Of a DNA stretch of 64,000 bases, positions 17,535-40,700 are shown piece by piece. Source of the stretch: Lytechinus pictus (lineage: Eukaryota); NCBI RefSeq assembly GCF_037042905.1, contig NC_087261.1, forward strand, positions 7,440,001 to 7,504,000, in the 5' to 3' direction. The notes under the pieces were generated by a model. It did not search any database, was not told where the DNA came from, and worked only from the letters and a program-made list of their open reading frames with translations. A program made the translations under genes and the position numbers. Every line of letters begins with the position of its first letter. The stretch's first letter is position 1.

Positions 17535-20500
17535 ATGGTGTGGTTGTTGTTGCTGTTATCATTACCCATCATTACATTCTGGCTTGTCCGCACAAATGCT
17601 TGCGCTTTCCCCAACAAGCGTTCCAAGACTTTGATTATTGCTAGGCATACGACCTGACTGCAAGGACTTCCACATCCTTCCAGGTACCCGTTTAATTCCT
17701 GGATGGAGAGTGGCAAAGTGTGCATTGACAACTTGCCAAATGGCACTTTGGCAAGTAGGCAATGTTCGCGGCTGCATTCGAACAGAAGACCTTATGATTA
17801 CAAGGCCGAGTGTGAGAATTGCTACGCCAGGACGCTTCCACAATGCCATTCAACGAAATTGATAAAATACATCACATACATGGGCCTGTCTGAGAACAAT
17901 TTCTGTAGGCCTGTCATCTGCAATGAGAATGCATAATATGACAAAAATCCGGGTCAACTTATGAGTAAAGGTGTGAAAATTGTTATTTTATGGTAAACGA
18001 AACATTGGACTGGTACATAATAGTTTAAGTAAAATACAATCATTTGGAGATTAGGTCTAAGAAAAAAAATCTTAGATGGTTGGAAATGGATGAACGACGG
18101 GAGCAATAAGTGTGTGTATATTAAAAAAAACAAGGTTATCAGTTCCATACTTATACACTGTTAATATAAACTAGGGTTACCATTTCTACATTTAACGAAA
18201 TCCAAATTAAAGTAAAAGTATATCAAAGCAATGCTGATTAGGGAACAAAGAGTGTTATTGTTATGCAAACAGATGAGAAGAGTCATGGAATTGGCAAACT
18301 AATCCAACATGTACAATATGTGGTTGTACAATATTATAAAACTACAAGCTGACTGCCATTCCATCGTTCACCGGACACCCCCAGCAATAGTCATTATGAA
18401 CATGATGAAAATGGTTATACAGATCCAATGCCATATTATTATTACAGAGCTGTTAACCTTGTCAACTATATCTAAAGATTATTTTATTTCAAAAAGCATT
18501 TCATGCATTGCACGTTTAACATGACAGTAGATACAAATATTTTGTTTGCTTTTTTGTTATTTTCCAGGGTTGTCACGCATTCAATCTTTGCTTTTGTGAC
18601 CACCCTTTCAGCCATCTTGTTTAGTGTGTAACAGAAAATACCACTCAAACTGTTCACTTAATATGTATGATACATTGGATGGTTCATACACAGAATCATT
18701 TGTTCATTATCTTGATGTCAAATTTCAAATATGTATTTTCTTGTCTATATATTTTTTTGTTTTTGCAAATGTTGCCAAATCCAATAAATGGAATGAAGTG
18801 AAATCATGGAAATGAAATATTTATGTCAACTTTACCGATGTCTCATCAAAATCGAATAAAAAACAAGACGTCTCTCTTGCGTATATAGCACCCGTAATTC
18901 TGTGATTAAGAAACTTGTTTTAATTTCGTATATACTTTTGTATTATTATAGAGCTCGCCATGAATATTATGCCTGTCCCGTTTGAGCAAATACTTGCAAG
19001 AATTGCTTGCTGAAAAAAGGAAGAAATAGCATATGGGGAGTGGCGATAGTGTTTTCCCGCTCCGACCAGAAGCGCGAAAAGCTTGTTTCATCAATTTGAA
19101 AGAAAAAAAAAAAATTTCACACTTTGCATAACCATTCTTTAAATGCATTTGCAAATGTACGGGAACAAAGAAGAAAATGTAATTTCATAAATTTCCCGCG
19201 CAAAGCGCGGTAGCAAAACTTTGTATACGAAGAGTATGAAATATGCAAATGCTTGTTTAGGTATGTATTCTTTTCATACAAAAAACTAAATAAGAGGGGA
19301 AACCATCAAGTTATATCCTTCTCCCCTTTCCTTTTTTCGTTTTGTCTTTTCTAATTTTCCCTCTTTTTTTTCTTTTTGGGGACTTGGGGGCACTTCCCGT
19401 CTGTCTACGCGCCTGTACTGATGATTACACAATATGTTTTTTAATGCATTTGCCCCTATAGATCGAAGCGACCACATCGGAACAGCTTAGAAAAGGCATC
19501 AAATTCATCTCACGAAAATCGACCGTTGATGACATACTAACCAACAACGATATCGGTCTCCGCTACCACGACGACTCAATTGACGTCACGGACATCAGGG
19601 CCTCGGCAAGCGTCACAGCGGAATTCGAAGACGATCTAGACAATGAGTCAGAGGATCCAGACTTCAGGGTCGCATTCGCTGTTGCCCGCGACCCATCGTT
19701 GTTTATTTCCGATGTCGATGAGCATGTAGTTGGGACGTATCGCAATCGAAATGGACGACGACGTCCCAACACGCCAGTGATCTTGGTGACCGTATACGGG
19801 CCAGGAAGAAAGAAGATAAAAACCGCGATTACCACAGTATTTCGTCCTATTGAGGTTAGTATAATACACTGCCAATTCAAACTAGATTAAGTCGAAGGGA
19901 GTTGGCACCATACGGTCAGTAAGATCGTTTTACCAGCACTATCGATATCTTGATATGATTTTACCCGACCTACTAGCAAAAAATAAATGAACTTAGATGA
20001 AAGAAGGACTCTTCGGGCAAGACATCAGAGCATTGAAAATTTGCCAGTGTTAATTGTGTTCTTTGCAGGAAACACTTCCTCTTTATATTTATATAATACG
20101 TACAGTAAATACATAAATTTTGTTTGGTTGAGTCATGCAACTCGGATTATTTCTTTTTCAATTGTTTGAATTCTCAAAAACATCATAATATTGTGAAAAA
20201 TAATTAGGCAAATGTCTGAATGCTGCATGGCTAGAGTTAACCTGTGAGTGGTCAACGGCGCCATTTGATGTCAGCGATCTTACCTGCTGCTGCCACCAAA
20301 CGACATAATTAGGGGCCAACTAACCTGCCTTCATGAATACACTCTTGAAACCATATTGAGGTCAGGCAATCTTTGTTTTAATTCTCACTTACCATTGCAA
20401 ATGATGTTTCATTATTACTGTAGAAAGGCAACAGCTCTGTGATCATCGACGATCCCGTCTGTGTCTTTTGGGATTATGAAGCCAGCAATGGTACCGGAGG

Positions 20501-23500
20501 CTGGTCTGGCTATGGCTGTTTCCTCCAGAACGACTCGGACACCGAGAACTTCACGGCGATTGTCTGCTCATGTAATCACACAACCAACTTTGCTGTTATC
20601 ATGGTAAATGTCCATCTTCGCATTTCACCATGGATGGATATGACTTCGTTACCTAACAACATGTCCAAGATACGAGGCTCCGCAGGCAATCAACATGACA
20701 TGCATGCTACGCTGATAAAGGCCATGATTCGGGTTTGAACCAGAAGCCACACCCAATTTTGCTTTTGCTATGTGTATTTCATTCATGTCTTGTTATATTA
20801 TCTTTTTGTTGTTATTATGTAAGCTCATTTTCATTTGTGTGTTATTTTTTAATATGAGTTGCCCATGGCCTTGCAGAAAAGCAGCTTCTAGTTGAAAGCA
20901 GGCTCTTAAACCATGATTCAATAAATAAAATACAAATACAAAAATGTGATATTTTTTCATTGTAAAAAATATCAGTAATAGAAATCCGTTTGTCCAGTGA
21001 TTTGTTTAGGGCTACATGATTTCAAATACATATCGATCGCGTTTCCCCCTTCTAATGATTATCATTATCAAAATATAATTTGTATGCATGAGATTTAAAT
21101 ATACTGTTCAAACATAATTAATTCTCATTAACATTTTTCTCATTCTCATGCTCTTAGAATTTTCACAGCCCTAACCCATCTGTCATCTTCCAAAAGACTT
21201 CGAAGTACTTGAGTTGCATCGGTTGTGGAGTATCTATTGGCAGTCTAATCATAACATTGGCGGTTTATGTACTTTCGCCGTAAGTATCAATCAATAATAG
21301 TTTATCGTGATTTATGTACTCCTTTAGGTGCAAGATTAGGCTATTCGCGTTACCGACTCTACTTGGAAGATATAAATATCATACTTCAATTACGATCAAT
21401 GGGTTTCGTTCCGCGATAATATGCACGTATTGAACCTCTGTTGGCTGCTATCTTGTTTACATTTGCTACAATCATGCCAGAGAAGTTCCCTGATCAGACC
21501 ATGAAACGGTCCATGATTTTCTGGTGGCATTGTAGGTGGAATGGGCTATGATTTGTGTGTTTACATTTAAGGTGAATAAAGCCTTGGTCACAAAATGTTG
21601 TGTTGAAAGGAAATAATAACTGAAACAGAATAACGAAAGTTTGAAGGAAATCGGACAAACAATAAGAAATTTATGGATGCTTTAATATTGAGATCCCTAC
21701 GACTATGTAATGTAGATTTCAAACTGGCAACTGGGTAAGAAAATTATAACAAGGGGCAGGGACGACTTTCCCATTGCCCATGTACTTATGCAGGGTTTTG
21801 GGTTTTTCTCCTAAGCACCGATTCCCCTGGGACGGAATGGAATTAGACTTAATGAAAATAGACCATGTGGTGAGTGGACAAGTTGGCAGTAGACGAATTG
21901 GCAATTTACCAAACCCACTTCACATCTTCTTATGCGCCGTAGAAACCCTCAGAAGATACACACACTCACAAAAATCACATCGTTTTTTTTTTACAATCGT
22001 TTATTTTCTCTCAAACACCAGAAAACTTCGTCAGAAGCAACCCAATCAGATCTTTATGAGCATATGTCTGTCTCTGCTCTTCCTCTACGTCACCTACATC
22101 ATGGTAGTCATACTCAACCAACAACGGCTCGTCGTTGTCGAATCCGAAGTCGACCTCGGCGATGAGAAGGATGTTGAGATATGGTGCTTTTGCCTCGCTG
22201 CCCTGATTCAGTACTTCACACTGACATCTCTTGTATGGATGGGCGTTGAAGGTGTTAACATGTACCAACTCTTTATAAAGGTCTTGAATGCAAGGATCCC
22301 AGGCTTTATGGCAAAGGCTTCTCTCGTTGCATGGGGTAATTATCGTTCTTCCATTTTATGTATGTGTTGACAAAAGCTATTACCTCTTTTCGGATAAATT
22401 GGGTGTCAGTTTTTTGCGTATCTTCAATTATACAATAATTTGTTAATTTTTAAAATAATTATTGCTGCAAACCAAGCTTGAATAATAGATCAGATATACA
22501 TTAAGGTCAATAGAATAGACGACGTTGGCCATCTTGGTGAATAGGTGAAGATCAATATTCACACCGTGTATTAATGATCAAAATCCTAGTACATCAGGGG
22601 AAGAAAAAAGTACCATATCAGTAAAATCAAGGACAATATTGATTATAATGCTAATTGTATGAAATAATGAGATAACTGATAATGATAATCAATAATAACA
22701 ATAATAATAATAGGCATTTATATAGCGCCATCTATCTAGAAATATTCTATTCCGAGGCGCGTTGTTATTATAATTATTACCCCGGCTTTAGCTCGAGCTA
22801 CCTCTCAGCGCTCATGCATTCAAGGAATAATGAAAATGATTGTAATGAAAGGGACGGACATTGGTATAAGCCCCCTTTCCACTTCTTCCATTATCCTTAT
22901 GCCGCGTTTGTATCCGGTTTTCTTTGCTTTTCACACCCACCTTCATTTTTGGGATACATCTATGATAATTCTAATAGAAAATATTTTCGACTTTTTTTAA
23001 TATCCAACAGGATTACCAGCCACTATCGTCGTTGTCACTGGGGGGATTGCTCGCAGGAATTACGTCGACCCAGATCTGTAAGTAAATATATGAGCTCTAC
23101 TCATTTTTGTCTCAATAATTCAATTAACGACTTTGGTGCTGTTGGCTTTTAGCACGGCAGTAGACATGGTAAAGGTACATGAAAGTGATGGTACTTATAA
23201 TAGCCATGAGAGATCCCAAAATCCGAAAGGCGAACGGGAAACTTCCTGTGATATCAAACATCAGCCCTGCGGATAAAAAGAGCAAAGAATGATGAATGAG
23301 TGGGCTTGCACATCGTCTGCGTTCGCGGAGCGGGAGTGGCCGCACCCTTTCGAGAAAACCGGGGGAGCTTTTCTCGAAAGGGTGGGTTTCGGTAACACTC
23401 ATGCTCGCCAGTATCGGCACGAGCGAGCAGTGGACAAAATCGTATGGATTCAAAATTGCACGATGAATGGATAAAACAAAATAAACAGATAATGGCGTCA

Positions 23501-26500
23501 TTGTAAAATGGGCTGAATGATCGATATCAAACAACCAATCAAGGATCTATCTTGGTGTCATATAATGCACCTAAAATACACAATGCTGTGCAAATTATGC
23601 ACGTGACTTATACATGCATTCACTGTTGGCTACATCCTTTATAAACCCGTCTTATAACATGGTTCTTTAATTTATATTTCCCTTATAACAGTTATGTAGG
23701 CCTATCGTATTAACAACTTGGCGTTGTTTTCGTCTCCATTGAAGACACTTTTACCCCTAAATAGCTTATAATTTCTTTCACATCGTATCAGAACTCCATC
23801 TGATTAATTATGACCAAATTCTGACAGTAATATAAATCCGTTCTCCTAAAACATACCAACGTCCCCGACGAAAGCATAGACTATGGCGAAGTAAGCCGTA
23901 TTTTGTCATTTTTTATTCAATATCTAGAATATCGACCTTTGAAACCAACAATGTAGATTAAAAAGTGCAGACATTGTTGATATACTCTTAAAGGAATATT
24001 CCGGGCTGATAATATTTATATCTAAATAAATAAAGTAAAATTTACAACGCTAAATGCTGAAAATTTTCATCAAAAATCGGAGAACCAATAAGGAGTTATT
24101 GAATTCTTAAATTCAGCAATATTTGATAAAAACAGTGAATATATGCATGTCGTCCTGAGTATCCATTAGATGGGCTGATGATGTCACGTCCCCACTTTCC
24201 TTTTTCGTATGTTATTACAAGAAATCAGTTTGGTTTAATTCTTTCACACATGTGTAAATGATGTGTCTCCATTATAATGAAATAAGTTGCAGCAATAAAT
24301 AACTAATGCCCTTAATCACTTGTCAACCCAATTGTTTTAATTCTTTGTATAATTTTTTTGAATAAACCTTATTTCATATAATGAAATACAAAAGAACAAG
24401 TGGAGATATGACATCATCAGACCACCTCGTAAATATTCATGAAGACATACCTAGAACTGTTTCACCGGAATAATGCAAAATTCAATAACTTTGTCATTTG
24501 TTATCCGATTTTGATTAAATTTTCAGCATTTTGCTCTGTGAATTTCACTCTATTTATTGAGATTAAAGTATTTTCAGCCTGGAGTATCCCTTTAAAGGAC
24601 AAGTCCACCCCAACAAAAAGTTGATTTGAATAAAAAGAGAAAAATCCAATAAGCATAACACTGAAAATTTTATCAAAATCGGATGCAAAATAAGAAAATT
24701 ATGACATTTTAAAGTTTCGCTTAATTTCACAAAACAGTTATTTGCACATCCTGGCTGGTATGCAAATGAGGAGACTATGACGTCATCCACTCACTATTTC
24801 TTTTGTATTTTATTATATGAAATATGAAATATTATTATATTCTCCTCATTGTCAAGTGATACAACAATTAATTCCTCTCTGAACATGTGGAATTAGCATT
24901 GTTTAATACTATATGGTTCAGTCAAGTTGGTCCTTATTGTCAAATCTGTAAAAAATAAAATATTGTATAATTCAAACAATAAAAAACAAAAGAAATAGTG
25001 AGTGATGGAAATCATCGAGTGACTCACCTAATTGTGCATTATCACATGTTTTGTGAAAAATAAGCGAAACTTTAAAATGTCATAACTTTCTTATTTTACA
25101 TCCGATTTTGATGAAATTTTCAGAACTATGCTAGTTTGAGTTTTCTCTATTTATTCAAGTCAGCATTTTCCTGGGGTGGACTTGACCTTTAAAATCAAAT
25201 TTGACATGGGTATCAATAAGCAAATTGATATTGGTGTTACCTGTGACTGGGCCGGAGAGAAAGTTTCCTATACCGGTAAAGAAATACGACAAAGCGACAA
25301 GTCCCGCAAAATGGTTCTCATCAACCATTTCAGCCAACATTGCGAAATATATTGCCGTAGCACCAAATAAGCCAAATCCTGCTAGAATTGAACAAAACAG
25401 CAAATTGATGAGCGAAGAATCAATGGTGTAGGCGAAGAGCGACAATGCCGACAGCATCGTCAGCGAAGCATAAACCGTGGGACTCCAGTGCGGTCGCCAC
25501 AGTATAAGGATCCCGGTGCCTATCCGACTTGCCAGTCCTCCAGCAGATGCTGCAACTGGAAGATACACGGCCTCGGATGCATGGATGCCTACAGAGATCG
25601 CGTAAGATACCATGAAGATTAGCCAACCGATAAAGGTTAAGTCCAGGAGAACTCGAGAAGGTAGGACAGTGAGGCTGAATGGCAGTTCTGCCTTTATGGA
25701 TTCGTACGATATGGTCTCGAGGAGAAATTCAAGAATACACTTCTTGAGTCTTTGGTAACGGCCTTCTGTCTCGCCTTTTGTCTCGATGTGTCTTTGATTT
25801 ACGTAACTGTCAATATCGCCACATTTAGTGCTCGACGCGTCGTTTGGCGAGTTCAGCAATACCAAGTGCTCTCCGTCATCATCTTCGATTGACGACGAAT
25901 CGTCCTCGGTCATCTCCTGACGAGCATGAGACCTGTTGATGTTTCGTAAACAAGTATTGCCAATCTCACCATTACTCGATTCACTCCCGTAAGACGTAGA
26001 TGGTTTGTTAATCGCAATGAAATGCAGAGTCTCAGATGTTGTAGAACGACTCACGCTTCTAATAGCAAATCGCAGATTTGAATGAGTATTGCCGGACTTG
26101 TATTTTGCCGTTGGTTCACCAAGGACACTTGAAGATGTAACGCGTGACTCCGGATGTTTCCATGAATCTCGGTCCATAATTCTCGAACATTCTGTAACTA
26201 CCTCTTTTCCTGCATTTCCTTGGGAGTTTGATAGTAGGGACGAGTCGGGGCACATTGAACCAGGTCTTGTCTTTTCTCTTTCTTGCAAGCTTCCCCTTCC
26301 CGACAGCTCTGCTGTTTTCGGTGGTCTCATTAGCATGGATAGTGGAACATTATTTAAACTGATAGCTCCCAGGCAAGATAAAGTTCCGTATAGTCCATAC
26401 GCAACGTAGAGTTCCATTGTCAAAAGGGGCAAAATCAGAGATCCTATTACAGACCCAGCGTACGTTACGGTATTCGCGAAACCAAAGGAGTTCTTGAAAT

Positions 26501-29500
26501 GCTGTTTCAAAATGATGACGATATAATCCGTTACTACAGAATAGCAACAACCTGAAAAAGGAAAAGGAAATGGAGCCATTAAACCCTTTTTGTTTATGTT
26601 GGTTGTTCACTTTATGTTAATAACATAAAAATATGGACCATTGCGAGCAAAGATCAATAACGGTTAGTTACTTTCAAATGCCATCAACCTACGGAACAAA
26701 ACAGAGTATACTCATTTACAAACTGTTACCCTTTAATAAATAAATAAATACATAAATAATTAAATGAATAAATCAAATAAATACATAAAAAAAGGAAGAG
26801 AGAGAAAAGAAAGAAAAGAATAAACGAAAAATTATTAAATCAAAACCAGGCATTAGCGATGTTGAGTTTCACCCACTTGTGAAAGTAACCAGAAATGTCG
26901 TGATTTGCGAGGGCATGCAACAGAATTGTATCAAAAGTTCATTGTAAAATATTTGGGATGGAATAACATTTGTCATAAAAGTCTTGCACATAAACTTTAA
27001 TTTTGATCTCAAAATTACCTTTGACCTTACCGTTAGACCTCCGACTGCACCATAACATGCAAGTCTCCTAAGTACAGCTACATCCCAGGTTTGGTTCAAA
27101 AGTGACTTACGGTTGCGGAGTTGTGTTTCATAAGAGATTATTGCATGTAAACTTTAACGTTGACCTCAAAATGGCCTTTGATCTTACCATGTAACCTCCG
27201 ACTGCAGCATGACATGCAGGTCCCCTAACTACATCTACCATCCAAGTTTGGTTGAAAAGTGACTTATGGTTGTGGAGTTATGTGTCATAAGAGAGTCTTG
27301 AACGTAAACGTTAACGTTGACCTGAAAATGACATTTGAACTTACAATGTGGCCTCCAACTGCAGCATTACATGTAGGTCCCCTAAGTACATCTACCCTCT
27401 AAGTTTGGTTGAAAAGTGACTAACGGTTGCATAGTTATGTGTCATAATGTTTGTGACGGACGGACGGACGACACTTTGATCCCTTAGTCTCGCCTTCACC
27501 TCTGGTGGGCGAGACATTAAAAACGAACGTGGTAAAAATAACAATAAATAATTGTTAAAATGATAACAAAATCGAGGAATGAAGACTTAAAACATAATGA
27601 TAATAATAACAATAATAAAAAAAGGAGCGTTGCCCACTACCACACTTCATTCCTCCCTGTACCGTCCTCTGTATCATATCATGTACAGTGGCGTAACTAC
27701 GGGGGGAACATGGGGGCACGTGCCCCCCCCCCCCCCCCATCGGCTGGCAAAATAAACGGGGAAAATGAGAAAAAGAGGGAGAAAGGAAGAGAAACCTAGT
27801 GGGAAAGAAGAAATTATTGTTCATTATAATTATAATTGTAATTATGTTATGTTATATTACATAAGAATTTTTTTTTCATAATTTTATGAAATATGATTTA
27901 CTCAGGGCCTATGTCTTCATTGTTGCTTGTGCTCGCATTGTCTGTTTAACGACATACATATTCCTGTTGTACTAAGACCTCCCGTTATATACACCAAATA
28001 TATTTTCTCGCACTTTTCGAGTTATAAGTTTCGAGTTTTAAGTAGTGACATACGCTTCTTTTTCATGACTACATAAAGTGATTGCCCCATTTTTAGGTCT
28101 TAATATAAAACATTTTCTGTCCGTGCTTACGTTCGCATGAGTGGATTGTGATATATGTCTGCTCTTCATGAATTCCTAAAACCAGTCCTTAAAATGCCCT
28201 TTTCTAATCTGAATATCAAAAATTTTCAGCTCACGCCTCGCGCTCGCATCATTTGGTTAGTGAAATACGTATGGTTTAAGTGAAATCTTACAAACAAGCC
28301 TTAGAATGCCCCTCTTCATGTCTGAATTTCCTAAATTTTCAGCTCGCACTTCGCGCTCGCAATATTTGATTAGTGAGATGCGTATTTTAATCATGATTAC
28401 AATGACTACAAGTGCTTCATGTGTTTAGATGTAATTCTAACAAAATCAGCATGCGCTTGGCACGAGTTCGCATTAGTTATGTATACTCTTAAAGGATTCC
28501 TAAAAATAGTCCTTAAAATGTCCCTATTTGGGGTCAATATATATAAAAATTTCGGCTCGCGCTTCGCACTCGCATTGTTTGTTTAGCGAGACAGTTACGT
28601 ATCATGATTAAAAAAATTTGCTTATAATGTCCCTTTTTAGGTCTAAATATCGACAATTTTCAGCTCTCGTTTCGCGCTCGCATTATTTGATCAGTGACAT
28701 ACATATCCGTTTAGTGGCACTGTCCTTAAAATATCTCTATTAGTTCAGTATACCTACTAAGTGACTCAAAATTTTTGCTGGTGCCCCCCCCCCCCAATGC
28801 CGTGACCCACGGTACACCACTAATCATGTATACTTTTAAAGTTTATTTCTGTAGGAAGACAAATAATGACCTATTTAAAAACAATTTTTTTTCAGTCACT
28901 TCATATCAAATTCAGCATATTTTCCTTTATTGTTCTTTCCTTATTTGTTTTTGTGTGGGGGTGGTACATTATCATATGATTGAAGTAAACAACATTACAA
29001 TCAGTGCAGCTTACCTGATATGAGCATGCATAGTCCCATGGTCCAAGCTGTTTTGGCAAATGCTGTAGCTACCAGAGCTAACCCGGACATGAAGCTACCA
29101 CAAACAGTTACCAACCTGCCATTCAGTCTATGGATGAGTAGGTTAGATAGCGGAGCTATTAAAGGGTATCATACCCAATTTAAAAAAAAATGATTTTAGA
29201 GGAAAAGGAAAATCAGACAAGTTCATAGGAGAAAACAATACCGGACAACCAATAAAAAGTTGTGAATTGTTAAAAGTTGTAAATATTGGTAATCACTATT
29301 ACCCAAAGGAGACTTCAAATTGGCCGCAGATGTGATGTCATAGTCATGATAGTGATGTAAGGCAAGGACTACTCTTCCTTGTACTCCTATACATACAATT
29401 GCTAAAATGTCATTTTTTCCCCAAAAGTTGTAATTCAAATTATATGTTTATTTGATGAGGACATAAAACAATATACTACCTGGGTTATATTTATATAATA

Positions 29501-32500
29501 TTGACTGGCCTTGAGGGGAACATCAATATATTGCCAGCAAAATAATCATATTGGCCCGAGTCTTTAGACGAGGGCAATATGGGTCTTTTAAGGGCATTAT
29601 GTTTGATGTTACCCGAAAGAAGAGCCAATGAATATTCTTTATTATCATTCAAATCAGATATCTAGAGCAAAAATCGTGATAATGGTGATATTTATTTTAA
29701 GAATAGAGTCCTATCGTGCCATGTTAATATCAGGGTCTAGGCTCTGCACTTTACCATTACGACGTAATTGTAAGCGCGCATAGAGACCGGGGAAAATACA
29801 AATAATATACCTATCCCTTCCGGGTATTAAAAAAAATGTAGGGCAATATGGTTTGTAAATGACCAGCTCAGATGTCTGATACTAGTGATAATTAGATATA
29901 CTGCCCCGCGGGAATGGGTACTTTGAAGAAAGCCTTAATCAAGTACTTTGCCTATCCATACATGGTATATTGTTTTATTGATATTTTCCACCATGTACAC
30001 ATGGAAGAACAAATACAGATTATTGATTTTAATATCCTAAATAAACCCTCTTTAATTCTGTGTCTGGACTATTTACGCGCAGATTATTAAAACATAACTT
30101 TGGCAGATTAGGCCTTGCTGTGTCGATTTAATAAAATATCAACAAAATCAATAGAAATTGCAGTTTTAGGAATTTTCATTTGTACATTTGAAGGAAAACT
30201 TATTATGTTTGCTTGGATTTACAGAATCACTCATATATAGCAGTATACGACAAATCTTAAATAGCCATCGCGGAAACTGTCGTTCCAAAATGAATGATGT
30301 CGCTTCCAACCATTAGCCAAGAATTCTCAGTACTTTTCAGGTACTTCTCATAGACAAGATAACATAGATGCACACTGTTTATTTTAACTACAGCTCATAA
30401 TGGTTATACCATCTCAAATATCACCATATTTTATTTATTTTATTAAAACCAACCTACCACTGAAATTGGCAAATGAGGACTTTTTTTAACAGAACTCACC
30501 CAAGAGATATAATACTGCGAGTTGTGATGTGATGATAAAGCCTATTGTTGCATGACTTGTCTTTAGTTGAACTGCAAGAAATGGTATGATGACGCCGTAC
30601 GATTTCAACAGCCCAATGAGGAAAAATCTCAAACTAGAACATGAAAATAGTACAACAAAGCGCCATGGTTCCAGCCTACTCCTGTTTAACTCGTTCCTAC
30701 AAAATCGTCGGGACATTTCTTCCAACCAAGTCGGTGCTCAACACGGTGAATAAAACTCTGTGTTCATTACTCCCTCTCATAAGGACGAATAACACCAATG
30801 CGTCGATTTAGAAGTACTGGTGCATAAGTGATGAGGGGTTGTTACAACCGATAATCCCGACCTTTCGTTGGAGAACGCGAACGCTTATTTACGACGGTAG
30901 TTGATTTTGGAAGAGACTTTTTTGGCCCGTCGTGATGGTCGTAAAACCCCGTCCTGCAATGCAAATTGTGTGACATGAGATTTTTTTTTCGTTTCGCATC
31001 TGCAACGGAAACATTCAATATGCGTTTCATGTGCAAAATTCTGGTTGCTACTATGGTAACATCGATATATCCGATTTAGGACGAGTTTCCAGAGCCACAT
31101 TTGGTTCCTCCCAGAGCTCGAGAGGCCGCCCGGGGGGCCACTTCCATTGACGAGTGGATACCAGCCGCGACCACGTGTAAAAGGGGACAGAGTGGGCAAG
31201 TACGTTACGTATAGGCCTACATGTATGTAACGTTATAAGGGTGTCAAAAGGATATATTTCCAATACTTGTAGGATTTCACAAGCCAAATACTTGTTAAGA
31301 GATGCATTTTCATAATCTGGAAAAGATTTGCTTCCCTTGTTTAGGGTGTTTTTCGAAACTCCATGGTCGTGCCTGGTATCCACTCATCAATGGAAGTGGT
31401 CACCCGGGAATTTGAATCTAATCCCCCATTTCTGGGGAAAGTAAAACATAATGCCCATTACATTGTGTGCTAGAGGCATATCGTTTGTGTAGGAGTAAGC
31501 AAAAGAAAAAAACCCACAAATTTGGCTTGTGTTCAGACGTTTAGCATGTTTAGGCCTATTGCCTATGCCGTAAACATATCAACGCATGCGAAATTGTTTC
31601 GGCTGGAGAGACGATCTGACCCATGGAATCAATTGCCAGTGATCCACCAATAATCCACATTAAATGCAATAACGATTCGATGGACTGTAATGATCTATAT
31701 CTAAGCCTTAATTCAGTAACTTTTTCCTCACTCAATATGTACTCGATTTGTTTGAAAAGCACTTTCTTATCCATGTCATAATCTATTGTAGGCCCTGCAT
31801 TTCGAATATCTCCAGCCAGCTGTCATAGTAGAGGCTCGTCGCCGGCTCAGGGGGCATATACGATGATGACCATCAGTCGTAATTTACATGCATGTATGGT
31901 GCGGGTGTCGCGGGAAAGAATTTTGCACACGAAAAGCAGATCTGTAGGGCCTGTAACCCCCTGTAACACAAAGCTTACCAATGATTGTAGAGCAGTTTTC
32001 TACGTTTGATTCTATTGACTTTTTTGTACAATTAATCTTAAAAATCAAGTGTATGATTAAGCGATAACCTTTGTGTTAGGGGACTCTAATATTACCGTCC
32101 GTGATGTTTGCGAAAGGTGGCTAATGTCGCACCAACGCATAATGTCGCAGATTGCGACATTAGCCACCTTTCGCAAACCTCACGGACGCTTATATTAGGG
32201 TCCCCTAACACAAAAGTTAACGCTTAATCATAATTAGGTGAACAAAATCTACACTATTGTGGTTTCAAGGCTAAAATAAAAAATCGGGACAAATAACAAG
32301 GATGGTCAGTTTTCTTTTTCTTCGTAAAAAGTCCAAAGCGACTTCTAAAATTGCGTAAAAATTACTGCTGTCTCCTAATCATGAAACCATAGGAGAGTCC
32401 TAAGCACTAAAATGACGTGTCTTGAAATACTTATCAATGAATTACGGAAATTTTAGGTGAAAGTGTACCTTATTTTTGAAAGTTTGTTTTTTGGATATTT

Positions 32501-35500
32501 ACTTATTTTTGCACCATCATCTAATTATGTCACTAACTCTTGTAAAACATATCTTTATGAGTCTTAAAAACAGAGACACCAAAATAGTGGTACTAGATGG
32601 GATATGAAGTATTATCATGTTTGTATCAATGGTGGCCAATTCGAATGGAATTTTTGGAGCGTTCTTCCATTTTTTGACAAAATAGACAACAGCGTATCCC
32701 AGTAGTTCGTCTTAACCTTTTTTTTTACCCTTGAAATCATGAGAAAGACACAAAAATGTCTCTAGGTAGATAGTATATGCACTTTGCAGCAAATTTTTTT
32801 AGAAATGGCAACTATTTCTTAAGCCATCATCATTTTTTTTTCAAAACTGCACTTCTGATAAACCTTGAAATTTGACCAACGTAATTTTTCCCTTTTTATT
32901 TTTTTCTCGGTAGACCTTAAAGTTATTAATAATAATATAATAATAATAATTTTATATACCACAAAATCGCAAAATTGCCTCTAAGCGGTTAAGAGAAAGG
33001 AAAATGAAGTATAAAGGAAATAGAAATAGAAATACTTTGCACAACAAAATGTATCAAAACTAATATTACAATTTACAACTTTCTCACCAGATCATGAATA
33101 AAGAAATACCATCAAATGGGCCAATAAACGTATGATATGATCAATTTAAGATCAACATATGATATGATCAATTTAAGATTATTATATGAATTTGGACCAT
33201 TTCAAAGTTACAACATCCATTATAGACGCCATTTTTGAAGGTCATCTTGGATTCTCTGACACACTCACTATCTTGTCCTGATTCATTATTTGCCTTGAAA
33301 GCTTTTTTGATGATTTTGATTTTGATGATTTATTTAATTTTTGGAGTTGATGGTATACAGCGACTGCCGTTTTGGACGCTATGTTGGATTCCCGGGTACC
33401 CTTGACGACCTTTTGTAGCTATAACCTGTCTCAATAGACTTTGTTTAATCCTAATTTCATGAAATAGACATCTATAACCTAAAAGTTATGACATTCCAAA
33501 AACTTAACCTCGGTTAAGATTTGATCTTGACTTCGCCGCGCCGCCATGGTCATCGCCGCCGTCGGAAAAGCGACGTCCATGTCTTTCTTCTGCTATGCAG
33601 GCGAGGAAAAAATGGCGGACACGTTAAAAATATCACAATGTGATTATGCCAGCATCGCCCCTAAATTATTAAACATTTGGCCATATCAATCAGCAGCTGT
33701 GAATCATGGCAGCCATCTTGGAATTAAAGATGGCTGACGAATTAATCGGACACATTATGTTTGCAACACTGGGTATCAAAAATAACGCATAGACCCAAAT
33801 TTCTGAAATATAATCACCCATAAAAATCGTTTAATATAGGAAACTGCATTAAAAATGCCGCCATTTTGTTTTTTGCCGATTTGAGTCAGAATCAAGTTTG
33901 ACAAACAGCATTTTGGATTCAGCACCCCTGAATTACCTTAAAACAATTGATAAATCAGCATTAACACAAAATGCCTAAAGCATTTTTTCTGAGCACATTT
34001 AAAAAAATCTGGACCTGACTATCCGGAAAAAAGGTGGTTTTGTTCCGTTTATTATTTTTTATTCGGTTTAACATAAGATATCTCGGTTGAACGGATCGAT
34101 ATTGTCAGGAATCTGGAATCATTGTAAGCTAAAGAAACATACTCTATGACGTCTGGAAAAATTGATGGAACGAAAAATGACGAGGGGGGAGGAGGGGGAG
34201 GAAGAGGTACACATAAAGTCTATATGACAATCACGTTTCATATTTTAAGCATGAATAAATTTGGTATACAGCGGTCTAGATACTTAATGTTGGTCTTATT
34301 TTAAAGCTTGAAGTGAGAACTATGAAAATCCAACTCTCTATAGAATTTGTTTCGATTAAGTAATTTTAATGACCGATAAATAATTTTAAAACCCTAAAAC
34401 TTTTCATTAAAAACACAAAAAAATTCGCATAGGAACAACTTATGACGTGATTTTTCGGCTAGATGGAGATGCATTATTATGACATATATGTCATTTGAAA
34501 GCTGAGTATAAGCTGCATTAGGGGTGATAGTAAAAGCTTAATTGTATGCATTTAGATTTGAGTCAATTTGCTCGATATAATGAATAAAACAAGGGTTATT
34601 AAAAAGGGGTGGTAGAAGCGGTACACATTGCATGCAACGGTATGGGATTGTTGTATTGCTAGTAATAAACATAAGAAACTTTGGCTTCCAAGGGGCTCTA
34701 CTTTTGATTTTGGTCTCATTTTACAGCTAAATATAACAGGTATAATAGTATACCTCTATACACAGCATACATTTATCAATTATAATTTATAAGAAATTCA
34801 AGGTAAAATCTATTTCCAAATGTTGGTTTTCGATATTTGAAATTAACATAAATTTGCATATGATAATTGCCTTGATCAAAATACTGAATCTCCTTAAGTC
34901 ATATATCATTATTTTGAAAGGGAATCTCATCAGCAGTACAAATCTGATAACTATTAAATGATGGGCAAAGATATAAAAAAAATGTGGATGTCTGAAATAA
35001 AGTATATTCGGGGTTCTGAAATTTGAACATTTTCATTCATAAAATGTGAGCAGACCACCCTACCTCCTTTTTAGTGCCATTCTTGAAATCCCCATGAGAT
35101 TTCCTTTCAGAAAAAAGTGTACTTTTGTATGGATAGGGTGAATGTATTCAAAGTTATGGACATTTTTATACCGATAGGTACGCTATCGTTAGATTTGGGC
35201 GACGTGACACGAGTCAAGACGTATGACCGTTATTAGAAATAACCGCAAAAGAATAACTAGTTGATATCAAATCCATTTCCACAATTGGCCAGCGTCCCTC
35301 AGAAAAACACGTGGGCGCCAAGCGATTTGTGGTAAACAAATTCATGAATAGAATAGACCATGAATAATAGTTCAATTGTAGTAATATCAATTTCATTCGT
35401 ACAAAAGTGCATTTTCCGCTATAATACTTGTTATAGGCTGGTTTTTAGAAATAGAGATTTTTTTTTTATTCAACATACTCTCAGTGTGGTTTGTATTCTA

Positions 35501-35713
35501 TCGTATTTTGAAATATGATCGAACTTGTCCTTTATTAATGAAAGGTGATATTAGACTAAAGTTGTAGATTCAAATTATGCAAACAAAAATTGATGAACCT
35601 ACAAACTTTTTTTGTAAATTCCTTATCTTTTAAAAGCCTTTATATCAGCTAGGAATCTATTCCAAGCCAAGAGATAGAGAAAAAAGCTCACCCAATATAT
35701 AATTTTTTTTCTA

Positions 35714-35744
<31 letters not shown>

Positions 35745-37698
35745 CTCCGGTGGCAGGGTGGGTTATCCCTTCTGCAATAATGATCTTTATTAAAGCATCA
35801 AAACATTCTTGGCAGCCAAAGACTGAATTACAAATGTTTGTACCAGGTATATCGATTGACATATACTTTTGACAGAATAGTATACCAGAAATGTATATAT
35901 ATATATACATATGATTGTGAAGATCAGGGACCTATACATTGCGAGGTGCTTGCTAGTACATATTTGAGAGGATGCTATATGTAGATACAGCGAGAATGAA
36001 GCAATGAGACGTAGCCGGGGTTCATATAAACTTGATGAATTGAACCCCGGCTACGTCTCATTGCTTTATTCTCGCTGTATCTATATATAGCATCCTCTCA
36101 AATATATATATATATATATATATAATGTAAGGGGGCTCTCAGCACAACGAGTAGTGCAGGTACTCATCATTTAGTGTAGATAAACTTGGAAGACATAAAT
36201 AACGACGAGTGAGACGTATCTCTCATGTTTCCTTTTTTATTGCAAGCTTTCGGCCATCATCGGCCTTCGACAGGCCTACAAAAAAGAAATCAGATGGGAC
36301 AAACATAGTATTTACATATATATAAATTAGGTATAATATTGCATGTGTTTATAGTACTACAGAATTACGCTTAGGGGTTTTACATATGTGGTTAGAATAT
36401 GATTAACATTTAAAATTATTTAGTTGAAGTTACCGTAATTTTATTGCTGAACTATCATCGACCTGAGATGGCGGTGTGTTGTCCGATGGGACGGTGACCA
36501 GAAGAATGGTCGTTTGGCGCCTGAGAGGGCGGTGTGTTATGGTCACAGAAATTACAATCGTGGATTACTGGGACTGAGAGTCCGATGGAACAATAGCCTG
36601 TATGGGGTCAGTTAAGTATGTAACATCATCGGAAGTAATAACGGAAAATCAATATAATAACTGGTAACGATGCCATTATTACGATCACCATCATTACAAC
36701 CATCATTAAGTATCATCGGAGTATAGACATTATATCATCATTATACTATATATATATATATATATATACACTGTTGGTCATAATGGTGGAATAATTATTT
36801 TTACCCCAGTTTAGGGAAGGATTTAAAAAAATTATTTATTTCTAATAGATCTAGATAATGGCATACATTCTCAGATTTTATTGAATATTGATTTGCGAGT
36901 GTTTCTTTTGCGTGACTGCTAAATCATATGTGTGCTACTATGCTAATCAGCTAGGGAACCTACGTCCTTAAATCATAATTGACAGTAATGAGGATTAATG
37001 CCTCACAAAAGGGCACTTATATAGCTAATCGACACGATTTTTATCCTGGGGCCTCACAGTAACGAGGCCATTACTTAGCCCCTGAATCATGACTGTACGC
37101 AGTGTTTGCTAGGGTACGCGGCCGCCCCCACAAATCCCCCAAAACGAAGAAAATGCAATAAATTGTCAAAAATTCATTGCAATTTCCCCCCGCCCCCAAC
37201 AGGAAAAATTTCTCTGTGTGGCCATGCCTTGAACCATAATGCATGGCCCTACAGAGGAATTTTTCCTGTTGGGGGCCGGGGGAAAATGCAATAAATTTTT
37301 GACAATTTATTGCATTTTCTTCGTTTTGGGGGATTTGTGGAAGGGGCCGCGTACCCTAGCAAACACTGCGTACAGTCATGATTCAGGGGCTAAGCAATGG
37401 CCTCGTTACTGTGAGGCCCCAGGATAAAAATCGTGTCGATCAGCTATATATCAGTGCCCTTTTGTGAGGCATTAATCCTCATTACTGTCAATCATGACTT
37501 AAGGACGTAGGTCCCTTAGCTGATTAGCATAGTAACACACATATGATGAAGCAGTCACGCAAAACAAATACTCGCAAATTAGTATTCAATAAAATCTGAG
37601 AATGTATGCCATTATCTAGATCTATTAGAAATAAATAATTTTTAAAAATCCTTCCCTAAACTGGGGTAAAAATAAATATTCCACCTTTATGACCAACA

Positions 37699-37775
<77 letters not shown>

Positions 37776-40700
37776 GCCTGGTAACAATGGTAGGCGTATA
37801 GCTTAAATCAAGGTTCCTCAGAGCTACCTGCCCTTAGAAAAATTGGTGATGCCGAAAAAATGTCTCTGCCGGGAATCGAACCCTGGCCCCCAGATTAGTG
37901 GTGAGGGTCGGGACCATGGTCAGGGGAGCAAGAGGACCAAAAATATTACGCCATTTCCTTTTTTATAATTTATACAAAATGGGTACCTTATATAAGCGCT
38001 ATAATGCCCTCCTTATACATGTGATAGTTTATATTTATGTCTTCCTCCTTTGCTTTGCTTTTCTTTTAATTTGCTATTTTTCATTATATTTATTTCACTT
38101 TTGTATTAGGAGTTACCATCACCTTTGTCACCTTCGAATACATGTACAAATTATGTTATGACAGAAATCAAATCTAATGATATACCGGGTCTCAGTCTGA
38201 AGAGTCTTGTAGCGCGCAAACACAGGAACAATATGAAACTTTAGATCATTCTATATCCTCAAGCTTGTCTTCAGTATATTTCTAGACTATAACATCGCAT
38301 TTAAACTAATAAGAAAATCACCATACCAGCAAAAAATTTCCAGGATGCTCTTGTTTCTACTTACGTACTCCTCTTCTGCTTTTTTGTGTTGTTGGGATAA
38401 AGAAATAAGTATCAAATCGGTTTATTGAACCCAGTTATAGACCTACATGAATGTTAAAACAAAATTAGTTGGGGACAGACTTCATAGATTTCGGAAATGT
38501 TCATTTAGCAATACCATTTTTTACGAGTCTGTCCAGCCTCGATAGAACAGTTTATTTTCGTTTTTGTTCTTAAAGTATGTAGCATTCCACCAGATTTCTT
38601 TATTGAAGACAAGAAACTATTTTATTTACACCATATTGTTATTGTTTTACAACAATTATTTATTGAAATCCCTGTATGAAACAGATGCCAATGCAATAAA
38701 ACTGATTATCGAATATACTGTCATAAATATATAGATTGAATAAACAAAAGTAATGCTATCATTTATTTTCAGTTTAAACTGATTTTCTCTAAGATTTATT
38801 TTCATCCATGTTATTCATTATTTTGCGTTTCTAACAGATTTCTATTCTGGGAAAAAATATGACATATCGATAACGTGGCTTTATATTTCTTCTTTTGCAT
38901 TTATCGCTCATAATACCCCACTTTTTTTTTCTTCAAGCCAGTTATTAAAAGTAACCGATTTATGTTATTCCTTATGTTTCCCCTGTGCATACTGATCTTG
39001 CTCTCAAAACATTTACTCATACTGGGCCTTCAATTCCTTTTTGGAACAATTTAGACAGCGATATAATTTAATCGCCTTCTTTGTATTCTTTTAAACGTAG
39101 ACTGAAAAAGTTGCTTTTACAACCGTATGCCTGTATGTAGTAATCACATTACTCGAGTGACTATCATGTAGACCACTATACTGTATTCATATTTCTTCAC
39201 TTTGATCTATCTTCATTGCGTTAGGAGTTTCTGATTATTATTTTTTCTGGGAACCTATGATTACGAGCTTTGTTTTTTAATAGGTTCTTCATATTTCACG
39301 TTATTCAATTCAATTCAAATAGTAGTGAATAGAAGTGAATGCAATCATTTTCATTATGTTCTTATTTGTTCAAGATGTATTTACTTTAATGGAATGTGAA
39401 ACAATAAAAATAAAAAAAATCAAATCATATACTTTGGTTGACACAGGAAGGCTTGAAGGTTACCCGACGTCCCAAATTCCAAGGGATGGTCCCGTATTTC
39501 ACCCATGTGTCTCGTGTCCCATACGACCCTGCTGGGGATGTCATTTTTCCCGCGTTTCTCGATTTTGAACACATTTATGCGAGAATTACCATGCATTACA
39601 TTTTATGCGTAATATACAATAAACCAAATTGATTCATGTTTATCTGAATCAATCATGCATTGTTTGCGAAATCTTCGTGAAACCTATTGAACATGTAGAG
39701 AAAAGGTTCGTTATCAGCTGTATGAACTCAAGATGAATTTGTGTATGTGTGTGAGGATTTGAGTGCGTGCGCCTATTATAGAAGACCTTTAACATTAGCC
39801 TTAAGTCCGTTAAGTAGTTCATAACTCATTCTATTATTTGGATCAGTGACGTAATAACCCAACCCGTTTTCGTAATATTACATGCGTATGTGGGAAAATA
39901 GCTAAAAATTCGCGAGAGAGCAAACAAATTTGCGTGCATTGACCATGTTGACCCAATGGGTGAAGTAGGGTTCGGTGTCTGTTTTAGATTCGTCTTTAAT
40001 CACAAGATTGTATTATATGATTTGATGTCATGTTCTATATTTTATTGGTTTTTCAGGTGCTTCCTTGCGAAGATGCCTAAGATTGGTGGTTTGCTATGTC
40101 CCATTGGTGTGATCATCGTAGCAAACATCGTCATCTTTACCATGGTTGTCATCAGACTCGGGCGAACCATACGGACAACATCACCCAAAAGGGAAAGTAT
40201 CATCATGCGTGTCAAAGAAGGTCGGCAACGATTGCAGAAAGCCATCTGTATTTTCCTTCTCCTAGGACTCACCTGGTCATCGGGGTATCTTCTCCTCATC
40301 GGCACCGACTTCAATCAGATCTTCCAGATCATCTTCATCGCCTTAAACTCCTTCCAGGGATTCTTTATCTTCGTCATCTATTGTCTTCGACAGCGCGTCG
40401 TACGGGCCGAGCTGAGCAGGATGTGTGGTTGTGGAGAATCCAAGAAACGACGAAGTATCTCGCTCTCCAGTGCCAGTCAACGGGAAGAGACGGTGAAGAC
40501 CCGTCATACTGAGATGCAGTCGACGACCGTCGGTCCATCCTATCAGGGCATCGAGCTCGAAATATCAGATGCTGAAGATGCTGTAAGTCAGCCGAATGGA
40601 GGAACCAGTAGGGAAGCAGGGGATTGTACAGAACTGGAGCCTGGTCGACCTGATAGGGAAAGGGGAACACGAAAGAGCTCTGCACATCCAGTCAGGCAAA

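Follow-up and report, generated by a model that had tools for sequence, protein, structure and literature searches.

Receptor and transporter genes on opposite strands

The window (the whole 64,000-nucleotide stretch of DNA that was analysed) carries on its plus strand a WSC-GAIN-GPS-7TM adhesion GPCR and, inside one intron of this host gene, a transporter gene on the minus strand. The features of the two genes are as follows.

12144..12440 (approximate bounds), plus strand: host WSC-domain exon (Pfam WSC, E=1.3e-12 at 12062-12475)
20439..20600, plus strand: host GPS exon (Pfam GPS, E=2e-15)
22022..22335, plus strand: host TM1-3 exon (7tm_2 profile 21-126; splice sites identical in L. variegatus)
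23011..23077, plus strand: host exon of 67 nt covering TM4 and the beginning of ECL2 (acag before it, gtaagt after it)
23078..40056, plus strand: host ECL2 intron of 16,979 bp, phase 2, holding the transporter coding exons
40057..40864, plus strand: host last exon with the ECL2 Cys, TM5-7, a 140-aa tail and the stop (7tm_2 profile 160-250)
30500..30716, minus strand: transporter coding exon 1, TM1-2 (ATG at 30716, donor GT)
29015..29155, minus strand: transporter coding exon 2, TM3-4 (AG/GT; 141 nt in both species)
25241..26551, minus strand: transporter coding exon 3, TM5-6, a ~180-aa cytoplasmic loop and TM7-11 (Pfam MFS_1)
23124..23266, minus strand: transporter coding exon 4, TM12 (stop TAA at 23126-23124)
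22918..23123, minus strand: transporter 3'UTR (from spliced RNA contigs), overlapping host exon 23011-23077 in antisense, splice sites included

The WSC domain is an extracellular adhesion-type domain of the host, with putative glycan binding. The host GPS reads CSCNHT/TNFAVIM, a tethered-agonist-like sequence, and the GAIN/GPS region stands directly before a secretin-type 7TM, the arrangement that defines an adhesion GPCR (class B2). Separate plus-strand exons encode the GPS and the N-terminal and C-terminal halves of 7tm_2; the TM1-3 exon ends at 22335 and not, as the earlier note had it, at 22338. The ECL2 intron is positioned just before the conserved ECL2 cysteine, and its acceptor (ttttcag before 40057) leads into a last exon with 93% amino acid identity to L. 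variegatus. Joining 23077 to 40057 is predicted to give ...AWGLPATIVVVTGGIARRNYVDPDL/CFLAKMPK..., in frame up to the stop at 40864. This predicted join is supported by conserved splice sites, by strong purifying selection in each half of the 7TM and by the occurrence of the exon pair in relatives, and the 67-nt TM4 exon is also present in L. variegatus and in L005, a more distant echinoid. The proposed splitting of the 7TM in ECL2 by a 17-kb intron was borne out, with the TM4 and TM5-7 exons lying 16,979 bp apart.

All four transporter coding exons (30716-30500, 29155-29015, 26551-25241 and 23266-23124; 23124-30716 overall) fall inside the host intron and are bounded by AG acceptors and GT donors. 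Their uninterrupted CDS of 1812 nt encodes a 603-aa SLC16-like MFS protein, in agreement with the length, four coding exons and opposite strand claimed before. Exon lengths are 217/141/1311/143 nt compared to 217/141/1260/143 nt in the NCBI L. variegatus model; exon 1, whose ATG position is common to both species, has 90% amino acid identity, and exon 3 is 83% identical to the L. variegatus MCT7-like protein. Confinement to the intron holds for these coding exons but not for the mRNA, whose 3'UTR crosses host exon 23011-23077; ATTAAA at 23001-22996, past that exon, was the earliest poly(A) signal in a scan. With this amendment, the structural reading of an SLC16-type gene antisense within the ECL2 intron of an adhesion GPCR, transcribed head-on to its host, was right.

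By sequence the transporter is SLC16-type, while transport of monocarboxylates or related substrates is a prediction. Pfam MFS_1 matches the L. variegatus orthologue at E=1e-20, NCBI names that orthologue "monocarboxylate transporter 7-like", and the PDB matches to the transporter at E<1e-3 are all MCT1, 2, 8 or 10 (SLC16). Proton-coupled MCT1-4 have characteristic charged residues, known from MCT1, namely TM1 Lys38 and a TM8 Asp/Arg pair. In the alignment the transporter appears to keep the equivalents of Lys38 and the TM8 Arg, whereas the TM8 Asp aligns to Gly, unlike in MCT1-4, in a C-terminal alignment of low confidence (E=0.011). Like the SLC16 structures (MCT1/2/8/10, e.g. 7y1q, 7bp3), it has 12 TM segments and a long TM6-7 loop, although its similarity to them is only about 25-30%.

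Public gene models and RNA from the locus

The gene pair is already visible in the public annotation of L. variegatus (GCA_018143015.1, CM031031.1), where a 586-aa "MCT7-like" MFS_1 gene lies within a 1039-aa WSC/GAIN/GPS/7tm_2 gene on the opposite strand. We compared the 1039-aa receptor by length, Pfam content and gene range; its product contains GAIN_ADGRA3 (weak), GPS and 7tm_2, and its CDS ends at the orthologous last exon, with splice sites identical to those of the window. The two loci share an orthologous pair, exon structure, splice sites, orientation, transporter splice and UTR overlap, and differ in that the L. variegatus intron is 11.6 kb rather than 17 kb and its transporter loop is 17 aa shorter. 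About half of the ECL2 intron of the window aligns collinearly to the 11.6-kb intron. Whereas the L. variegatus models span full genes, both genes appear as fragments in the public annotation of L. pictus and of the genome of the window: the receptor models P0004 (263 aa, genome of the window) and P0154 (279 aa, L. pictus) cover the last exon only, with the ATG of P0154 lying within the intron, and the L. pictus transporter model is a fragment of 359 aa. A search of public collections for spliced receptor products of 150-470 aa found nothing new.

To ask what is transcribed, RNA contigs and reads were aligned to 21700-27699, a region with two host exons (TM1-3 and TM4), the UTR overlap and the splice between transporter exons 3 and 4. 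The RNA came from two Lytechinus species, X20 being from the species of the window; the X6 contig and the X21 and X22 reads carry L. variegatus alleles at 17/17 positions. An X20 contig of 1970 nt matches 23050-23265 and then 25240-26555, spliced as predicted for the transporter, and the other 432 nt are consistent with exons 2 and 1 together with some 74 nt of 5'UTR. The same 23265/25240 join was found in the X6 contig and in raw reads of X21 and X22. Expression of the transporter exons, on which the earlier note had staked its reading, is thus documented by spliced contigs and reads. The antisense 3'UTR extends at least to 23050 in X20 and to the equivalent of window position 22918 in L. variegatus (X6). 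RNA strand was taken from GT/AG orientation only, as Logan contigs carry no strand; over the transporter exons, first mates were mostly plus in X21 (10-13 vs 0-1) and reversed in X22 (0 vs 2-4), so these libraries look unstranded or fragment-poor.

On the host side, a 2526-nt X20 contig crosses into the TM1-3 exon precisely at position 22022 and stops at 22336, and a separate X20 contig of depth 18.5 is restricted to about 23010-23077. The stop at the end of the TM1-3 exon, together with public models P0004 and P0154 that cover the last exon only and could reflect an independent promoter, would fit a receptor split into two units, the WSC-to-TM4 exons and the TM5-7/tail exon, with the transporter between genes rather than nested; moreover, the 23077/40057 join is predicted from sequence and not from reads. 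We nevertheless consider such a split highly improbable. A 3-TM fragment is no functional GPCR, yet TM5-7 evolves under an omega close to that of TM1-4 (0.15 and 0.11, respectively). The donor at 23078 and the acceptor at 40056 are conserved in L. variegatus and annotated there as part of one product, and in L005 and three paralogues the same two exons are neighbours, separated by 0.3-1.8 kb with no change of phase. The depth-18.5 contig also covers the TM4 exon, and the transporter contig breaks 28 nt inside that exon at 23050, which would be the k-1 overlap expected, from the way assembly graphs behave, if other RNAs branch at 23077. Finally, the partial L. pictus transporter model indicates that annotation of the locus is generally fragmentary.

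Transporter and host RNAs were both found in the same bulk samples (X20), indicating that both genes are transcribed. The convergent overlap of the two units is real and spans about 7.9 kb (22918-30790), and the transporter mRNA is complementary to the 67-nt host exon over its full length, including the splice sites at its two ends. These features could suit a functional coupling in cis, in which head-on transcription and the overlap of 3'UTR and TM4 exon act as a switch, either gene blocking or truncating the mRNA of the other; were this true, glycan sensing would be linked to metabolite transport. One X20 contig (22307-22676) does continue beyond the host donor at 22335 into intronic sequence, at depth 4.2 vs 10.6 for the exon; the receptor encoded by such a transcript would stop 12 aa past TM3. 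A nested gene can also lead its host to retain introns and to polyadenylate at cryptic sites (PMC3192792). However, this strandless contig may derive from pre-mRNA or from transporter read-through, and the two RNAs occur together, albeit in bulk samples, which cannot resolve single cells. We regard coupling of this kind as very unlikely. A narrower version, in which the antisense transporter, newly acquired in Lytechinus, acts as a cis-regulator, seems very unlikely too. Convergent transcription and pairing of the transporter 3'UTR to the TM4 exon and the splice sites there would shift the host to intron-retaining or prematurely ended transcripts for a truncated WSC-GAIN-TM1-3 receptor; under this version, the signalling competence of the receptor would be set by the expression state of the transporter.

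Selection on the two genes and the intron in relatives

Between the window and L. variegatus, omega for the host is 0.11 over TM1-4, 0.15 over TM5-7 and 0.33 over the tail, so that strong purifying selection acts on the receptor 7TM to either side of the intron. The transporter is intact, spliced, expressed and evolving faster than the receptor, with an omega of 0.51 overall, 0.41 and 0.30 for its TM halves and 1.0 for the loop. That the arrangement, including the UTR overlap, is common to two Lytechinus species could be taken as a sign of coupling. Yet the two species are close (dS about 0.12), with introns that still align at 80-90%, so retention of the nesting in both says little on selection.

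More distant comparisons were informative. L005 (SRR28370583; dS about 0.8) has 73% amino acid identity over the host last exon, compared to only 48% for the nearest paralogue in the genome of the window, which identifies it as a receptor orthologue. Its TM4 exon likewise measures 67 nt and the junction reads DPNL/CFL; its ECL2 intron is 662 bp, and no MFS sequence was found within it. Candidate receptor orthologues in S. purpuratus, namely the EGF-type P0176 at 40% identity and P0155 at 42%, were rejected as paralogues. Between the same exon pair, introns at this position measure 341 bp in P0155, 442 bp in P0176 and 1.8 kb in Diadema P0006, and in all three the transporter is absent and the intron empty. 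The absence of nesting in relatives, which the earlier note had named as a result that would make the arrangement a lineage-specific accident, was therefore what we observed, in the L005 orthologue and in the S. purpuratus and Diadema paralogues alike. It also argues against cis-coupling, given that the receptor works without the transporter in these genes. Loss of the transporter from the intron in the L005 lineage, instead of a gain in Lytechinus, is the less parsimonious account.

The closest Diadema transporter, P0003, shares the 4-exon structure; it lies alone on another contig, not nested. An insensitive word-indexed search recovered proteins of L. variegatus and L. pictus plus a single Diadema protein with 36% identity, and no transporter orthologue outside Lytechinus; the nearest transporter paralogue in the genome of the window is only 34% identical.

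Origin of the nesting and its likely consequences

The locus is very probably an ordinary pair of host and nested gene that arose in the lineage leading to Lytechinus. Ancestrally, the receptor family would have had an old phase-2 intron before the ECL2 cysteine, normally short (0.3-1.8 kb). An intron-containing gene of the SLC16 family probably entered this intron in opposite orientation in the Lytechinus lineage, by DNA-level relocation or insertion and not by retroposition, and repeat insertions may then have enlarged the intron, which now measures 11.6 kb in L. variegatus and 17 kb in the window. Each gene has retained its own function.

Such arrangements are common. About 10% of Drosophila genes are nested, 71% of them on opposite strands and typically in long introns (PMC5174743, Assis 2016); in humans, 17% of genes contain a nested one, with a preference for the largest intron, and about 20% of nested genes span intron and exon, with an opposite-strand bias (PMC11694760, Montibus et al. 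2024). The present pair resembles these animal pairs: the host is long and multi-exon, its largest intron holds an opposite-strand gene of few introns, the transcript of that gene runs over the intron and one host exon, both genes are expressed and the internal gene evolves faster. Unlike the internal genes typical of recent nestings, the transporter is not recognisable as a young duplicate, and it keeps three introns. Reverse-orientation genes in introns of unrelated hosts are also known from Synapsin/TIMP (PMC2825198) and LRRTM/alpha-catenin (PMC3933685), in sea urchin too, but those nestings are conserved across phyla, whereas the transporter nesting was seen only in Lytechinus. The suggestion that receptor and transporter form an undescribed system is thus not upheld, since opposite-strand nesting is frequent and the pair is annotated in L. 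variegatus.

A literature search directed at WSC-type adhesion GPCRs alone found no paper on them. No functional link between these receptors and SLC16 transporters is known, which further speaks against coupling. Because the units converge, a receptor polymerase would have to cross the roughly 8-kb transporter unit, and the transporter mRNA would end only past its antisense crossing of the 67-nt TM4 exon. Transcriptional interference or sense-antisense pairing would therefore be physically possible, and any interference most likely represents a by-product that is tolerated, not a coupling by design of a glycan-sensing receptor and a metabolite transporter. The mutual exclusion or coupling that had been proposed is not supported, given the lack of nesting in relatives and the presence of both RNAs in the same bulk samples.

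Although the locus reveals no new kind of system, it has value chiefly for annotation, as the evidence supports one full-length WSC adhesion GPCR with a 603-aa transporter inside its intron. It also represents a datable nesting gained within echinoids, the intron being empty at 662 bp in L005 and gene-bearing at 11.6-17 kb in Lytechinus. With a host coding exon overlapped over its whole length by an antisense 3'UTR, the locus could provide, in a laboratory sea urchin, a natural system for testing transcriptional interference.

Gene models of the receptor and the transporter

The window is animal DNA of low GC content, assigned by protein matches to a Lytechinus sea urchin. The encoded proteins share 97-100% identity with L. 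pictus models and about 85-93% with L. variegatus. The earlier note had placed an intact SLC16-type transporter gene on the minus strand within the intron that splits an adhesion GPCR in ECL2. The gene models confirm this observation, with only the end of the TM1-3 exon having been wrong; it lies at 22335.

Exons of the host receptor and the transporter
near 12144-12440, plus strand, host WSC exon (Pfam WSC)
20439-20600, plus strand, host GPS exon (Pfam GPS), carrying ...CSCNHT/TNFAVIM
22022-22335, plus strand, host TM1-3 exon (7tm_2 profile 21-126)
23011-23077, plus strand, host TM4 exon, 67 nt, placed by splice sites
40057-40864, plus strand, host last exon (7tm_2 profile 160-250, then a 140-aa tail)
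30716-30500, minus strand, exon 1 of the four-exon transporter CDS model
29155-29015, minus strand, exon 2 of that model
26551-25241, minus strand, exon 3 of that model (Pfam MFS_1 match)
23266-23124, minus strand, exon 4 of that model

When joined, the host exons read in frame through ...VAWGLPATIVVVTGGIARRNYVDPDL and CFLAKMPKIGG... as far as the stop, and the intron between these two segments (23078-40056; 16,979 bp, phase 2) lies directly 5' of the conserved ECL2 cysteine. A further ectodomain exon between WSC and GAIN (13138-13560) has no Pfam match. All transporter introns have a GT donor and an AG acceptor, and the 1812-nt CDS over four exons encodes a 603-aa protein, exactly the length first proposed. 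An out-of-frame upstream ORF of 27 codons (30697-30780, minus strand) overlaps the transporter start codon; its ATG at 30780 falls inside the ~74-nt 5'UTR implied by the length of a contig from the public RNA run X20.

Splicing and transcription across the nested gene

The host exons ending at 23077 and beginning at 40057 are predicted to be joined across the transporter, with support that is indirect but strong. In L. variegatus (GCA_018143015.1), a single annotated 1039-aa WSC/GAIN/GPS/7tm_2 product has the orthologous last exon as its CDS end, and a 586-aa MFS_1 gene lies inside it on the opposite strand. All five splice sites around the TM1-3, TM4 and last exons are identical between the window and L. 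variegatus, and a short TM4 exon followed by a phase-2 intron is common to L005, a contig with the receptor orthologue of a more distant echinoid, and three paralogues. Public models would fit a split gene whose last exon is separate from the upstream exons, in that both P0004 (263 aa, from the annotation of the window's genome) and P0154 (L. pictus XP_054772557.1, 279 aa, with its start ATG within the intron) contain the receptor last exon only. However, the L. pictus transporter model P0002 is also truncated (359 aa, beginning mid-exon). Moreover, host omega between the window and L. variegatus is 0.11 for TM1-4 and 0.15 for TM5-7, and the latter value would not be expected for a stranded 3-TM fragment. 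We consider a split gene highly improbable and read the public models at this locus (39956-40864; 25241-26551) as annotation fragments of the joined receptor and of the transporter.

RNA reads and contigs were placed on window positions 21700-27699. X20 is probably from the window's species, since only about 1.4% of the letters in its transporter contig differ from the window (22 of about 1530); exons are covered in this run, clean stretches of intron are not. In its 1970-nt contig, 23050-23265 is joined directly to 25240-26555, and the other 432 nt can be accounted for by transporter exons 2 and 1, which make up 358 nt, and a 5'UTR of about 74 nt; thus, the transporter mRNA is spliced as modelled. 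A 2526-nt contig from the same run passes into the host TM1-3 exon precisely at 22022 and stops at 22336, and its entry at 22022 indicates that the host is transcribed, with splicing upstream of this exon. Another contig, with a depth of 18.5, is restricted to about 23010-23077. At 23050, 28 nt inside the host TM4 exon, the transporter contig breaks, which would fit the k-1 overlap predicted for a branching of other RNAs exactly at 23077, although this is a reading of assembly-graph behaviour rather than a result.

At 17 of 17 diagnostic positions, three other runs (X6, X21 and X22) have the allele of L. variegatus. They splice the transporter in the same way as X20, with a 3'UTR that extends to the equivalent of window 22918. 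Between the transporter stop and 22700, the sole canonical-type poly(A) signal is ATTAAA at 23001-22996, within the pyrimidine tract of the host TM4 acceptor. Since this signal lies beyond the TM4 exon, every transporter mRNA must carry the reverse complement of that whole exon. The proposed nesting therefore holds for the transporter coding exons, which lie inside the intron, but not for the transcription unit, which crosses a host coding exon. Because read-pair orientation is contradictory between X21 and X22, the strand of the transporter RNA is assigned from splice-site orientation only. Read and contig depths are very high at 21700-21900, 22700-22900, 24100-25300 and 27100-27500, from hundreds up to hundreds of thousands, and internal joints are numerous there; these stretches mark high-copy repeats in the introns of both genes, to which much of the difference in size from L. 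variegatus is due.

Head-on transcription had been suggested to make receptor and transporter mutually exclusive or coupled. This mechanism is possible in principle but unsupported: host and transporter RNAs are both present in the same bulk samples, which argues against gross mutual exclusion, the single-cell level being beyond bulk data. The sole, weak hint of interference is an X20 contig (22307-22676) that crosses the host donor at 22335 into a 675-bp intron at a depth of 4.2 vs 10.6 in the exon (about 40%). This contig could be pre-mRNA, a retained-intron isoform or antisense transporter read-through; if translated, it would end the receptor 12 codons after TM3.

Transporter family and constraint

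The L. variegatus transporter orthologue, P0001, matches Pfam MFS_1 (E=1e-20), and every solved structure that it matches significantly belongs to SLC16 (MCT1, MCT2, MCT8, MCT10). In HMMER alignments, the equivalent of MCT1 Lys38 (TM1) and the TM8 Arg are conserved, while the Asp of the MCT1-4 TM8 Asp/Arg pair aligns to Gly (around residues 405-415 of P0001, in window exon 3) in a C-terminal region where the alignment is weak. The label "SLC16-type" is therefore justified, whereas "proton-coupled monocarboxylate transporter" is not established. The Gly, with the Arg and the Lys retained, would suggest non-canonical coupling or substrate.

Between the window and L. variegatus, transporter omega is 0.51 overall (0.41 in TM1-6, 1.0 in the loop and 0.30 in TM7-12), which means an intact frame under moderate constraint that evolves faster than the host, in agreement with the rapid evolution reported for nested genes (PMC5174743). 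The closest transporter outside the genus, Diadema P0003 (36-38% identity), has the same four-coding-exon structure and lies by itself within 23.5 kb; the Diadema receptors are on other contigs. Insensitive searches found no transporter orthologue outside Lytechinus; at least 40 SLC16-like loci are present in the window's genome, the nearest only 34% identical.

Conservation of the nesting

Within Lytechinus the nesting is conserved and the whole locus is collinear between the window and L. variegatus, but this says little about selection because the two species are close (dS about 0.12). The L. variegatus ECL2 intron is 11.6 kb long; it can be aligned at 80-90% to about half of the window intron, the remainder of which consists of indels and repeats. 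A stretch of about 3.3 kb (30840-34160), beginning about 125 bp 5' of the transporter start codon, has no counterpart in that intron, and the transporter upstream region therefore differs between the two species.

L005 (a 2.7-kb Logan contig from SRR28370583) contains the receptor last exon including the tail at 73% amino acid identity. The window's genome has no paralogue closer than 48%, and that one lacks the tail; L005 is therefore the receptor orthologue (dS about 0.8 from the window receptor). In L005, a 662-bp intron bounded by gtaagt...tcttag separates the 67-nt TM4 exon (...VDPNL) from the last exon (CFLAKMPK...), and nothing MFS-like was found in it. The same exon pair flanks an empty ECL2 intron in the paralogues P0155 (341 bp) and P0176 (442 bp) of S. 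purpuratus and P0006 (1.8 kb) of Diadema antillarum. With the nesting absent from L005 and these paralogues, the parsimonious reading is that an ancient short intron came to hold the transporter gene in the Lytechinus lineage; in the terms of the earlier note itself, this is "a lineage-specific accident".

Conserved nesting is known from synapsin/TIMP, which is found in sea urchin too (PMC2825198). A literature search for WSC-type adhesion GPCRs yielded no publication about them. In Drosophila, about 10% of genes are nested, 71% of those on the opposite strand and typically in long introns (PMC5174743); in human, 17% of genes host a nested gene, with the largest intron preferred, and about 20% of nested genes span intron and exon, the bias towards opposite strands being stronger among these (PMC11694760). 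Nested protein-coding genes are thus common, and the arrangement described here is an ordinary nested pair restricted to the genus, which can already be seen in the annotation of L. variegatus.
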